From the NCBI GenBank assembly GCA_964019335.1, contig OZ025702.1:186001-250000 (forward strand): a DNA stretch of 64,000 nt, read 5' to 3'. The notes beneath the pieces are model-generated. The model was not told where the DNA came from. It saw nothing but the letters and a program-made list of their open reading frames with translations, and did no database searches. This document shows, piece by piece, positions 11,171 to 39,793 of the stretch (position 1 is its first letter; each line of letters starts with the position of its first letter). This stretch comes from Diplonema japonicum (taxonomy: Eukaryota > Protista > Euglenozoa: Diplonemea). Made by a program: the position numbers and the translations under genes.

Positions 11171-11786
11171 AATCCCAGGTGGTGGCATATTTTTTAGGTC
11201 GCAAACCAACCTTGACCTTCGCCTTATACACCACAACACTGTCATCCTCTGTCTCAGCCGTCTTGAGGAAGCGATCCCACAGGGCATTCCGTTCTTCGAA
11301 AGCGTCTTCGAGTTCGGCCGTCCACCAGGGGGTCGGGCCTCGTCGCACTCCGCAAAGCGGAATGTGGTCGTCAGCTGCAAGCAGAAGAGCCTCTGTTATG
11401 GAAGCGTCTTCGAGTTCGGCCACCAGGGCTTCGGCGCTTCAGTTCAACTCGAATTTATATATTTCTTTGACCCATTGACACATCAGCAGCTGCAAAAATT
11501 AACAGCACGTGTCGTCTAGTGGTTAGGACGCTCGCCCCACACGCGAGAGATCGTCGGTTCAATCCCGACCATGTGTATTTTTAACTTTTTCACCACAGGA
11601 CTTAGCTGGTGCACTTTCGCCTTCCGAGCTGTCAGAGCACCTTAACCTCAGCAGCATTCGGGACCGCAAGTGGCAAATACAAGGTTGCAGTGCCACAAAG
11701 GGCGAAGGACTCGAGGAAGGGCTGACCTGGGCGGTATGATAGTAGAAATTATGCATGTTCCACAGGTTAAAGCAAGCACCAACTGA
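10469..11786 (+). CDS. ARL3: ADP-ribosylation factor-like GTPase 3; exons 10469-10506, 10552-10806, 10839-10926, 11599-11733, 11766-11786
   Basis: [38 protein letters not shown]|DL and [13 protein letters not shown] reconstructed across four GT-AG introns. Confidence 0.92.
10949..11021 (-). tRNA. tRNA-Ile (anticodon TAT), inside ARL3 intron 3, antisense to ARL3
   Basis: 73-nt cloverleaf GCTCTCG...CGGGAGC-A; anticodon arm CAGGT-CTTATGA-GCCTG; GGTTCAAACCC T-arm; T-run downstream. Confidence 0.9.
11115..11187 (+). tRNA. tRNA-Phe (GAA), inside ARL3 intron 3
   Basis: 73-nt cloverleaf; anticodon arm TCAGA-CTGAAGA-TCTGA; followed by T6 terminator. Confidence 0.95.
11197..11440 (-). mobile_element. 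Non-LTR retrotransposon ORF2 fragment (endonuclease-RT linker region)
   Basis: Minus frame [34 protein letters not shown] has the LINE 'A...IP.....PWW..EL......R' pattern; internal 20-bp duplication AAGCGTCTTCGAGTTCGGCC. Confidence 0.6.
11505..11577 (+). tRNA. tRNA-Val (CAC) with C33, inside ARL3 intron 3
   Basis: 73-nt cloverleaf GCACGTG...CATGTGT-A; anticodon arm CTCGC-CCCACAC-GCGAG; T5 terminator. Confidence 0.9.
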
Positions 11787-36261: not shown

Positions 36262-37393
36262 AGGGGGGGGGGGGGGGGGGGGGGGGAATTCAATAAAAAA
36301 CCAAACAAAACAAAAAAGAAAGGGGCCCTAGAACTATTTTTCTCCCGCTTCTTTTCTGCGCTCTCCCCTAAAACAATATGACCTACTCTATTCCATTTTT
36401 TCAAAAAAAAAAAAAAGCCGAGTTAAATGTTCAGCACAGACGGTGACTAGCAACTTCATTTCTTATAGACCTAACCCATAGGGAAGAAACACTCTATGGA
36501 AAAAAAAAAGGAATACATCAACACTCGATCGACTTTTTTATGTTGCCCTCTTCTCCCCCCCCCCCCCCCCCCCCTCTTTTTTTGAATCAAATAAAGGTCT
36601 CATTTTTTTTATGCTCATAACATTGTTATGGCATATTTTTTTGTTGTCTTTTCATCCCCCTTACGGCCAACTCAGCCAACTCAAAAAGTGGAAGAAAAAA
36701 AAAATAAAAAATAAGAAGAATGATGCCCTTTTGACATGCAAGAAGGAAAAAAAAAAAGAGAGAGAAAGAACAAGGAGCCTGTCCTCAGTTTTGGCTGCCT
36801 TTGAACCAGTTGTGCGGGGAAATTTTCCCCCCCAAACACCCGTCCTCTTTTTTTTTTTTTTTTTTTTGTTGTCCTTGATGCAAGCCTCTTCGGCAACTCG
36901 AGGAATTTGGTTAAATTGAGTTTTTTTTTTTTTTTTTCTCCCCCTTTTGTTCTTTTTCTTTTTTCCTCTATCGATATCTCTAAAAGTCTTTCCTTTATTT
37001 TTATTTTTTATAACTTTTTTTTCCCTCTTGGATCCAGGTATTATTTTATTAACGTTAAAGTTTCAAGTGTTTTCGAACTGACAAAGTTCCAAAGCAGATT
37101 TTACGAAAGAAAAGTTTCATTCGACGAACGAACGGAAAAAAGAAGGGGAAAAAGAAGAAGAAAACGAGTTTATTCCTGTTGGCAAACTGCAAAGTTTGGA
37201 TCAAATTACAAGCGCGAATTATTATTTTTTTTTTTTTATTGGGGTTGGCAGCATAACCTTTCAAGGGAATTTTCCAGTGGCACACTTATGAGGTGTGTCT
37301 CTCTTTTTCTCTGTGAATGACGAAAATGCATGCCTTACTATTTTCAGTTTTGTTTTCCTTAATTTTGTGTACCAAATGAGAAAAAAAGGAAAA

Positions 37394-37466
37394 TACACAT
37401 GGTCGGGATTGAACCGACGATCTCTCGCGTGTGGGGCGAGCGTCCTAACCACTAGACGACACGTGC
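37394..37466 (-). tRNA. tRNA-Val (CAC) with C33, second identical copy
   Basis: Reverse complement is identical to 11505-11577; followed by T4. Confidence 0.9.
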
Positions 37467-37477
37467 TGTTAATTTTT

Positions 37478-37728
37478 TTTGCAATAATAACCACTGGGGG
37501 GAAACCGGGGGGTGTGGGGTGTCCAGTCTTTTGTCTGAGAGGGCCACCACGTGGGCTGAACCTTCCCTTCGGTGCTCCGTTCCCCCTTCCTGGGACAGCC
37601 GACCTGGCTGATTGCATTCGGGGCGGTCCCCTCGAGGCTGAACGCAGGGGCGTTCTCTTGCTGCGCCCTGCGCCCTCCCGGCCTTCCCTGTGGCTGCCTC
37701 CCGGGAGGTTGTTTCTTGGCCCATTTGC

Positions 37729-37777
<49 letters not shown>

Positions 37778-38340
37778 GGGGGGACAAAGGGGTAGGGGGG
37801 GGGGGGTCTATAATGGGCTCACGATCACCCTTGTGCTGCGTCGGCCGGGGGGAAGATCCCACACTCAGACCATGATAAGAGCCCGGAGGCCTCGATGAAG
37901 GCGCAGACCTCGGCGGAGTGCTTGGAAAGCAGCGCGCGGAGCGGCAGCCCAGTGTCGTAGAAGGACTTAGCTGTGGGAGCCAGAGAATGACAGCCCCTCA
38001 GCAGGTGATCTTGAACGTTGCAGGCGGGGCAGGTGAGGTGATGACTCCCCTCAGCCCTCAGGGGTCCCTTGAGCTGGAGGTACCCCCTCATCAAAGGCGT
38101 GTGTCCGGTCCGGAGCCGAATGATCAGGACCTCTTCCCTCCTACTGAGTGGTGGGAGAGAGAGACATTCGCCACCGGTGACGAGGCGGTGATGGCCGGGG
38201 GAGTCGCTGTTAAGTTTAGAGGATACAGCACCAGGGCTTCCCACGTGATCACTCACCGCAGTACTAACCTGGCCTGCTGGTGCTTAACTTCCCAAATCAG
38301 GCGGGATGGGGTGCATTCACCAGAGTATGGCCGTATCCGA
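37478..38340 (-). mobile_element. 5S rRNA-headed retroposon (SINE3-like or 5S-LINE chimera) with LINE-derived 3' part, inserted at the tRNA-Val start
   Basis: 15-bp TSD GTGCTGTTAATTTTT at 37463-37477 and 38341-38355; 5S head 38220-38338; LINE C-terminal motif RREEVLIIRLRTGHT...CPAC....HLL..C; A-tail merges into the TSD. Confidence 0.85.
38220..38338 (-). rRNA. Full-length 5S rRNA sequence (119 nt) forming the head of the retroposon
   Basis: GGATACGGCCATACTC...GAAGTTAAGC...GTTAGTACTG...GGTGCTGTATCCT; helix I ends pair; no T-run terminator follows. Confidence 0.92.
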
Positions 38341-38439
38341 GTGCTGTTAATTTTTACAGCTGCTGATGTGTCAAAGGGTCAAAGAAATATATTCGAGTTG
38401 AACATGAACGTGCTGTTTTCTTGTTAACTTAATAATAAT

Positions 38440-38981
38440 TAACTATTTATTGCCAACAAATTATGAGTCATTATTTAACTCGAGTTCCCGAATCTTTTGC
38501 ACGAGGGCCCTGCGAAAAAAACGGGTAACGAGAGTTAAATAATGGCTCATTTGGCGGCAAGTAAGTCGTTTTATTTCACTCTTCTTCATTTGAGTCACTC
38601 ACTCTTCACTGCTTTCACTGCTGTTTTTTTTCACGCAGGTCAGCCTTTTTGGGGAGTTTCCTAAGGTAATATGGGGTTGCTATTTCGCCGTGGCATTTTA
38701 AGGGGAAGTAAGGCACTTATTCCCACTTTTAAGGGCTGGAATGGCCTCAGATGGCCAAAAATAGTCAAAATACGCCCACCCCAAAAAAAATTTTCAAGGG
38801 GTTGGGTGCATTTTTTTCCACGGCGAGACTCATTTTTCCACTCTGAAGGGCCATTATTTAACTGCAAAATCTCATTATTTAACTAGTTAAATAATGGCGA
38901 TTACGCGTTAAATAATGGCCATTTCGCGTTAAATAATGAGGCCCCTAGTGAGTGAAGAAAATGACGAAGAGTGAAATAAAA
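38440..38981 (-). mobile_element. Non-autonomous Helentron/Helitron2-like element, copy A
   Basis: Asymmetric inverted repeats TTTTATTTCACTCTTC (38569-38584) / GAAGAGTGAAATAAAA (38966-38981) plus a ~120-bp terminal hairpin at 38447-38564; internal sequence shared with 44366-44778. Confidence 0.6.
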
Positions 38982-39641
38982 TAATAATAATATATGTTCC
39001 ACTGCGGGGGGGGAAACAAAAGGTAAATTACTTGGACCCCTCACCACGCTCTTTTCATAATAAAATCAAAACCGATCCCACCCACCAGGCAGCACCTGGG
39101 TCTCGAGGCATTAGCCGCCTCTAGTAACAAGAGACGACCTCCCAGATTTTAAGAACCTTGGAGGAGTTTCAATTGTGAATAAATTAACCAGCTGACTGTG
39201 AAACTCCACCGTCTGCTGGACTTGTTGGGTTTTAGGGAGCCAAAATTGTGTTAACTTTTAATAATAATAATAATAATAATATCTGTTCCACTGCCGGGTC
39301 GGGAGCATCAGGGAAGGTTTGAAAAGGATAAAAGGAATGAGGAAAGGAAGAAAAAATCAACAAAGCTGAGTTGAAAAGCAGAGCTCGAGAAATCAAAAAT
39401 CAAAGTGAAGGTATCATGAGCCTTTCGCCCAAGAAGAGAACAAACAGCATAGGTAGGGTTTAGCACTCCCTCCTTCTGGTCTTTTTTTTTTCTTTAAAAA
39501 AAGCTTCTGTGTGGCCAATTACCAACAGAGAGGAGCGGTGAGTACTGGGATGCTGTCCTTCAAGATCCTTTTATCATTTCTTTTTTCGTCGAAATTTACT
39601 AGATTGGAATACAAGAAAATAGACGCCAGCTAAATTAACAG

Positions 39642-39709
39642 TAACTACCCTTTTCTCAGGTGTTGCTCTCCATGGCGGCCCTGCATTGGTATTTTGAAAA
39701 AAAAAAAAA
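39642..39709 (+). mobile_element. 68-bp poly(A)-tailed retro-insertion at the tRNA-Lys start
   Basis: Ends in A13; flanked by 12-bp direct repeat CTAAATTAACAG (39630-39641 and 39710-39721), whose last G is tRNA nucleotide 1. Confidence 0.7.
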
Positions 39710-39720
39710 CTAAATTAACA

Positions 39721-39793
39721 GCCTCCCTAGCTCAGTCGGTAGAGCGCAAGGCCCTTAACCTTGTGGTCGCGGGTTCGAGCCCCGCGGGAGGTG
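39721..39793 (+). tRNA. tRNA-Lys (CTT) with C33
   Basis: 73-nt cloverleaf GCCTCCC...GGGAGGT-G; anticodon arm CAAGG-CCCTTAA-CCTTG; T5 terminator. Confidence 0.92.

Follow-up and report, generated by a model that had tools for sequence, protein, structure and literature searches.

The 64,000-nt stretch of DNA analyzed here (hereafter the window) corresponds to C55:186001-250000 in the 62.5-Mb assembly of the euglenozoan Diplonema japonicum, which comprises 132 contigs, and carries, at the very start of a tRNA-Val gene, an 863-nt composite of a complete 5S rRNA and the 3' portion of a long interspersed nuclear element (LINE). We name the LINE family that supplied this tail LINE-A. The composite is most probably a single recent chimeric retrocopy, in which a LINE-A retroposition event would have joined a nascent 5S transcript to the LINE tail, either by a template jump or by RNA ligation. 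A preliminary description of the same DNA had read the locus as a member of a euglenozoan family of SINE3-like short interspersed nuclear elements (SINEs); its account of the locus, host included, is borne out, and its interpretation is supported in part. The components of the locus and of its empty counterpart are listed below; TSD stands for target site duplication, ORF for open reading frame, UTR for untranslated region, and Pol III for RNA polymerase III. Locus coordinates refer to the minus strand throughout, unless stated.

38341-38355, minus strand: 5' copy of the TSD, AAAAATTAACAGCAC, 15 nt, the last 4 nt of which duplicate positions +1 to +4 of tRNA-Val
38339-38340, minus strand: TC dinucleotide that separates the TSD from 5S +1, equal to positions -2 and -1 of native 5S genes (CTC followed by GGATACGG)
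38220-38338, minus strand: complete 5S rRNA, 119 nt (Rfam RF00001, 102.6 bits, full model 1-120)
38212-38219, minus strand: trailer of the 5S primary transcript, CTAAACTT, consisting of CTAAAC and two T of the Pol III terminator (native genes continue from ...CCT into CTAAAC+T14)
37825-38211, minus strand: 5'-truncated end of LINE-A ORF2, 128 codons plus stop, starting AACAGCGACT; translation ...IIRLRTGH...CPAC...H...C, with a CCHC-type C-terminus
37481-37824, minus strand: LINE-A 3' UTR with C-run, (CA)n, and terminal TTATTATTGC; ~99% identity to young LINE-A copies in aligned columns
37473-37480, minus strand: poly(A), A8, the final five A lying within the TSD
37463-37477, minus strand: 3' copy of the TSD, AAAAATTAACAGCAC, 15/15 identical to the 5' copy
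37394-37466, minus strand: tRNA-Val(CAC), the intact target gene (ARAGORN; Rfam, 57.5 bits), identical to the paralogue at 11505-11577
11494-11508, plus strand: empty paralogous target site, where in the alignment AAAAATTAACAGCAC runs straight into tRNA-Val 11505-11577

The previously proposed order of components (TSD, TC, 5S, LINE tail, A8, TSD, tRNA-Val) proved correct to base level. A single 15-nt TSD encloses the whole composite, that is, 5S head, LINE tail, and poly(A), and its second copy contains the first 4 nt of tRNA-Val, GCAC. The paralogous tRNA-Val locus (11505-11577, plus strand) has ~65 nt of upstream flank and the entire tRNA in common with the occupied one; there, the 15-mer occurs once, at 11494-11508, and no insert is present, as the preliminary description had stated. 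One TSD around all three parts, together with the empty paralogous site, identifies the composite as a genuine retroposition unit. Its LINE-derived part accounts for 739 nt, and a segment of 893 nt served as query in the genome search.

The 5S head is 100% identical to 5S copies on contigs C59, C15, C17, and C52. The native 5S genes at C59:511924 and C15:778588 read ...CTC, 5S, CTAAAC+T14, and native loci match positions 15-144 of the 893-nt query at 100%, with 127/127 identical nt over 5S plus trailer. Apart from the 5S itself, this match takes in just the 8-nt trailer and 2-3 nt on the upstream side; the outer flanks differ. Because the trailer and two terminator U's are still present, the head derives from a primary Pol III transcript and not from the gene in its context, and its source is a C59/C15-type gene. 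The TC dinucleotide would be either templated by the 5S RNA or due to chance (1/16). Contigs of the Logan collection whose ends come loose at 38341 continue as native 5S upstream flank, confirming CTC on the 5' side of native 5S. The genes at C59:511924 and C15:778588 have identical flanks, and each lies 1-2 kb from a contig end; true 5S genes may sit in repeats at contig ends. It is highly improbable that the chimera is a read-through retrocopy, that is, that a LINE-A fragment lodged in a 5S terminator was co-transcribed by Pol III and retroposed to the tRNA-Val site. Just two terminator T's were kept, which would weaken termination, and elements in this genome do insert beside Pol III genes. 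However, the assembly holds no such source locus, and LINE-A goes to the starts of Pol III genes, not to their ends.

The longest LINE-A copy examined (L057) measures at least 6.4 kb and encodes an open 558-aa ORF1 and a 1319-aa ORF2, the latter with Pfam domains Exo_endo_phos (APE; 16-220), RVT_1 (498-724), and RNase_H (1019-1158). The succession of APE, reverse transcriptase, and RNase H, along with the C-terminal Cys/His motif (CPAC...H...C), is as in the I/Ingi group, the putative placement given in the preliminary description. With both ORFs intact and all three domains present, this copy confirms that the tail of the chimera derives from an autonomous LINE. Searching the genome with the 893-nt query returned at least 43 further matches, and the LINE part (query 145-883) was matched by more than 30 LINE-A copies, most of which extend upstream as ...GCGTGCGAGATAC followed by AACAGCGACTCC, i.e., into the full element. 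That most LINE matches begin at the LINE start of the chimera is only because the sequence of the element extends upstream there. In the remaining LINE-A copies, 5' truncation occurred at various positions spread along the query (212, 271, 397, 573, 612, 623, and others). With a 600-nt probe, many LINE-A copies are mutually 99-100% identical, and the family therefore is active or was so very recently; this census, as well as those of LINE-C and retroposon X below, is based on match tables alone. Relative to young LINE-A copies, the tail of the chimera has 5-6 private substitutions over ~735 aligned nt and three private deletions. Collectively, the 127/127 identity of the 5S, the perfect TSD, and the almost unmutated tail indicate that the insertion is recent.

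We next consider whether the chimera belongs to a family. When the whole 62.5-Mb genome was scanned with a 26-mer across the 5S/LINE junction, allowing up to 3 mismatches, one exact match was obtained, and the sole near match (3 mismatches) was a distinct chimera on C52 between 5S and a second LINE family, LINE-C. The genome search with the 893-nt element gave no other match covering both the 5S and the LINE parts, and a 20-mer across the junction had 0 matches in the metagenome contigs of the Joint Genome Institute (JGI). A unique junction had been named beforehand as the outcome pointing to a template switch; the chimera is thus a one-off, and its product has not been propagated. A propagating SINE3-like family, with the 5S head serving Pol III transcription and the LINE-A tail serving recognition by the reverse transcriptase, is therefore very improbable, even though the ingredients of a SINE are all in place (an intact internal promoter in the 5S, a poly(A) after the LINE 3' tail, and no TTTT ahead of the terminator of the tRNA) and the 5S head of the C52 sister was later hit by a further element, element B, in the geometry seen at tRNA genes, which suggests that such heads assemble Pol III factors. 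Besides the junction, unique in the genome and absent from the JGI metagenome contigs, other 5S fusions with different partners or junctions speak against such a family. A length of 863 nt also exceeds that of typical SINEs. As for TTTT, its absence from the chimera had been noted correctly (0 in 872 nt) and is common to other LINE-A tails, but the significance attached to it did not hold: the probability of finding none is 0.55 by shuffling and 0.49 under a first-order Markov model, so that base composition predicts the absence and the argument carries no weight. Together, these data largely refute a SINE3-like family in the D. japonicum assembly and correct an over-reading of the locus, which represents no new SINE family of Euglenozoa but a chimera in single copy, of the kind known as U6/L1 or 5S/L1.

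The point at which LINE-A was truncated in the chimera recurs elsewhere. In three independent insertions, belonging to two LINE families, the LINE part starts at the motif AAC(A/C)GCGACT:

Window 38211: LINE start in the chimera with 5S head, AACAGCGACT
C38:47972: LINE start in a headless LINE-A copy (L011), at the same base and with its own TSD
C52:246933: LINE start in a LINE-C copy with 5S head and the same CTAAACTT trailer, AACCGCGACT

Starts at this motif make up three of ~8 truncation points found within the 600-nt probes. Such recurrence would fit a discrete, sequence-dependent 5' end of the LINE RNA, set by cleavage or by a strong stop, and hints at a specific RNA-processing step. We considered and rejected the idea that the LINE-A and LINE-C breakpoints occupy a homologous position, as protein alignment places them ~6-9 codons apart and they have only the 10-nt motif in common. 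A ribozyme of the hepatitis delta virus (HDV) type at the LINE start was likewise discarded, since no nearby complement of AACAGCG is available to form the P1 helix.

The sequences around this breakpoint also bear on a two-event origin, by which a LINE-A copy truncated at AACAGCG would have reached tRNA-Val first and a 5S retro-pseudogene would have inserted later at its 5' junction. AACAGC indeed occurs on both sides of the 5S (...TTAACAGCAC-TC-5S-CTAAACTT-AACAGCGAC) and can be read as a 6-nt TSD, and the headless copy at C38:47972 proves that LINE-A truncated at the same base exists on its own. We nonetheless regard nested insertion as very improbable: a separate poly(A) is missing from the 5S segment, a perfect outer TSD (15/15) requires that AC be counted in it, the C52 chimera displays the same junction of CTAAACTT with AAC and no flanking repeat, and five fusions of 5S to retroposon X show that joining of 5S to the 5' ends of elements at the RNA level is routine.

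These fusions emerged from a genome-wide survey of 5S copies. Rfam identified 22 of them, all of which were inspected together with their flanks. Only a handful resemble native genes ending in a T-run terminator, and ~15 of the 22 consist of 5S plus a variable trailer (CTAAA, CTAAAC, CCAAACC, CTAAACTTTT, etc.) joined to other repeats. Five are joined to the 5' end of X, a retroposon of ~335 nt, with differing trailers and junctions (L041-L045), at the following sites:

C23:616749
C24:138938
C86:158144
C91:25522
C73:124645

Both native trailer types are found with both X subtypes in all combinations, which marks the five fusions as independent events. Candidate copies of X number about 1400, and among these the 40 with the best scores, the query copy aside, lack a 5S head; the heads are thus sporadic additions and not part of X. 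About 40 nt inside its 5' end, X shows a weak match to HDV_ribozyme (18.4 bits, E=3), below threshold. The sister chimera at C52:246942 (L053, C52:246500-248100) joins 5S and CTAAACTT to the C-terminus of ORF2 of LINE-C, a family that was active very recently, given that at least 20 of its copies are 98-100% identical over the 600-nt probe (e.g., L056:4268-4867, at C23:688767). With ~15 independent fusions between 5S and retroelements, retroelements of D. japonicum seem to favour nascent 5S RNA as a fusion partner. Fusions of 5S transcripts with retroelements are thought to be raw material for SINEs, and the repeated capture of nascent 5S transcripts by several retroelements may provide such material for new elements in this genome.

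Targeting of tRNA genes, also put forward in the preliminary description, is evident from the family as a whole. Ten of the 25 LINE-A 3' ends for which flanking sequence is available lie 3-11 nt upstream of position +1 of a same-sense tRNA (Val, Tyr twice, Glu, Cys, Leu, Asp, Thr, Ile, and Pro), and most of the other 15 border the end of another retroelement in a stack of insertions at such a site. The TSDs of LINE-A reach into the gene, to +4 in tRNA-Val at the site of the chimera, to +7 in tRNA-Lys (TTCCGAGCCCACC; L011), and to +5 in tRNA-Cys (CATGGGTA, present three times following serial insertions). An automatic TSD finder run on the other truncated LINE-A copies returned nothing, because most of them lie in nested insertions. 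The 21 nt on the 5' side of AACAGCG in L011 were entertained as a head derived from a tRNA 3' fragment; this was rejected, as they equal the TSD TTCCGAGCCCACC, which includes +1 to +7 of tRNA-Lys. Text searches of the literature found no LINE targeting tRNA starts described for diplonemids, and the published D. japonicum genome paper contains no analysis of transposable elements (PMC13598402). LINE-A is an apparently undescribed system, a LINE family that inserts within ~10 nt of tRNA +1 and duplicates the first bases of the gene. The chimera belongs to this wider setting of retroelements that target the starts of Pol III genes and recurrently capture 5S.

A second family has the same target geometry. 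Its copy in the window is:

39630-39721, plus strand: element B, a short 5'-truncated poly(A) retroelement, ...GGCGGCCCTGCATTGGTATTTTGA+A13, upstream of tRNA-Lys(CTT) 39721-39793

The TSD of this copy, CTAAATTAACAG, extends to +1 of tRNA-Lys(CTT). The 5S head of the C52 chimera holds a 366-nt copy of element B, whose TSD, TCAAGGAAGGATACG, corresponds to positions -8 to +7 of the 5S, and the geometry of this insertion equals that at tRNA-Lys in the window. A LINE-A poly(A) ends 8 nt upstream of the same 5S, with an ambiguous order of arrival. That the C52 head was struck with tRNA-gene geometry suggests that retroposed 5S heads are recognized as Pol III genes and, as the promoter of 5S is of a different type, that a factor common to Pol III genes guides targeting, which may involve recognition of the Pol III transcription complex (TFIIIB/TFIIIC).

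Some further observations concern the surroundings of tRNA genes. In tRNA-Lys(CTT) as in the two tRNA-Val paralogues, the sequence AAATTAACAG lies just before the gene and enters +1; it has 5 matches in the window (11496-11505, 37466-37475, 38344-38353, 39632-39641, and 39712-39721), with 0.26 expected; it may be an upstream or start-site motif common to a subset of tRNA genes. A similar string, CTAAACTTAACAG, arises at the junction of 5S trailer and LINE. A further retroelement family, ending in ...GGCAGTGGAA(C/T)A...(ATT)n, is often stacked with LINE-A near tRNA genes (L011, L019, L024, and L025), and a tail resembling this end is found at window positions 38420-38460 (minus strand), ~100 nt upstream of the tRNA-Val target. 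Finally, a long copy of LINE-A, located 76 kb away from the chimera (C55:301169-301176), ends in A8+TTAACAGC, with a flank as at the tRNA-Val sites, and the 5' end of one more element (CGTGTTGTGTTTTCC...) comes next; this is probably a third site of the tRNA-Val type that has been hit serially.

A plausible route to the chimera can be outlined from these features. The sequence shows that integration followed the usual target geometry of LINE-A: the poly(A) precedes tRNA-Val +1 by 6 nt, +4 is the site of the second nick, and the resulting TSD measures 15 nt. The 3' part was templated by a LINE-A RNA whose 5' end, AACAGCGACU, lay 739 nt away from the poly(A), and the 5' part by an entire primary transcript of 5S, its CUAAAC trailer and two U's of the terminator included. 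Having arrived at the 5' end of this shortened RNA, the reverse transcriptase would have jumped to the 3' end of the nascent 5S RNA and copied it through to its 5' end, a step that pairing of non-templated A's of the cDNA with the terminal UU of 5S could have aided. Alternatively, the 5S and LINE RNAs may have been ligated ahead of reverse transcription, as for U6/L1; ligation of U6 to L1 RNA by RtcB before reverse transcription is on record beside template switching (PMC6789731). We favour, as an inference, the end-to-end jump onto nascent 5S RNA. The internal promoter is retained in the integrated 5S head, which Pol III may well transcribe, and read-through to the tRNA terminator followed by release through RNase P, as had been suggested, is possible.

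Several points weigh against a one-step chimeric retrocopy with a processed LINE end. An Rfam E-value scan of 37380-38400 for a ribozyme at the LINE start retrieved only 5S and tRNA, and minimum free energy folds around the breakpoint in LINE-A, its 80% relative, and LINE-C had no structure in common. The sequence TTAACAGC is present in the TSD and again across the junction of trailer and LINE, perhaps by chance, and its doubling allows a two-step, less parsimonious reading. The DNA cannot separate a template jump from prior RNA ligation. The locus could also be the single-copy master of a young SINE, "not yet propagated" being indistinguishable from "cannot propagate". Lastly, contigs from four Logan runs over 37100-38700 bridged none of the TSD/5S, 5S/LINE, and LINE/tRNA junctions, because they break at every repeat boundary. 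An assembly artefact that merged a 5S gene and a LINE copy with the tRNA locus would accord with the lack of a bridging contig from public runs, but this explanation is barely credible: a mis-join would not yield a perfect 15-nt TSD that matches the empty paralogous site, the combination of trailer and junction recurs in the independent C52 chimera, and the published assembly of strain YPF1604 (62.30 Mb) was built from PacBio reads with Hifiasm to a quality value (QV) of 59.4 (PMC13598402).

A bolder view, doubtful but worth stating, is that the window element and its C52 sister are SINEs at birth, endowed with Pol III-competent 5S heads, a processed LINE 3' module, and a dedicated joining route. 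The AAC(A/C)GCGACU start would then mark a processed 3' RNA module, the minimal unit that the LINE reverse transcriptase recognizes, to which 5S would be joined either by ligation after a cleavage that generates a 5'-OH or by an end-to-end template jump. If true, D. japonicum would offer a natural system that repeatedly generates non-autonomous elements with Pol III promoters, observable before their amplification.

The singleton chimera that we favour has counterparts in known systems. The mammalian LINE-1 chimeras U6/L1, 5S/L1, and U3/L1 likewise combine a small Pol III RNA with a 5'-truncated LINE 3' end, and likewise show one TSD around the composite, a poly(A), and a junction unique to each (10.1101/2025.02.02.635956; PMC6789731). 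In mammals, 5S/L1 chimeras are frequently antisense as well as truncated (10.1101/2025.02.02.635956), whereas the D. japonicum 5S is full-length, in sense orientation, and followed by its terminator trailer. Also unlike in LINE-1 chimeras, the LINE involved here bears RNase H and targets tRNA starts, and its breakpoint recurs at one motif. SINE3 and other 5S-derived SINEs (zebrafish, fruit bats, Aspergillus AfuSINE3, and insects) have a similar layout, with a 5S head containing the internal Pol III promoter, a LINE tail, and an A-rich end. SINE3 families, however, have many copies with one head-body junction, whereas the D. japonicum chimera is an 863-nt singleton that includes 387 nt of ORF2 coding sequence, stop included.

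With regard to targeting, the closest published behaviour is that of Dictyostelium purpureum NLTR-A, an RNase H-bearing non-LTR (long terminal repeat) retrotransposon that inserts 2-6 bp upstream of tRNA +1 (PMC5006619); the LINE-A poly(A) lies 3-11 nt upstream, in the same orientation. The host of NLTR-A belongs to Amoebozoa and that of LINE-A to Discoba, and since these supergroups differ, targeting of the tRNA edge is presumably convergent. TRE5-A, for its part, inserts ~50 bp upstream of the tRNA gene, as against the 3-11 nt of LINE-A. Compared with NLTR-A, TRE5-A, and Ty3, the D. japonicum system differs in that the TSD reaches inside the gene, ending at +1 to +7, and that at least one further family, element B, uses the same site. 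Outside animals, the Magnaporthe MGL LINE and WEIRD RNA provide another case in which a LINE reverse transcriptase joins the 3' part of a LINE to an abundant non-coding RNA (PMC2104539), although with another partner RNA, another LINE clade, and no targeting of Pol III genes. We assign the D. japonicum chimera to a known type, the LINE-mediated small-RNA chimeras.

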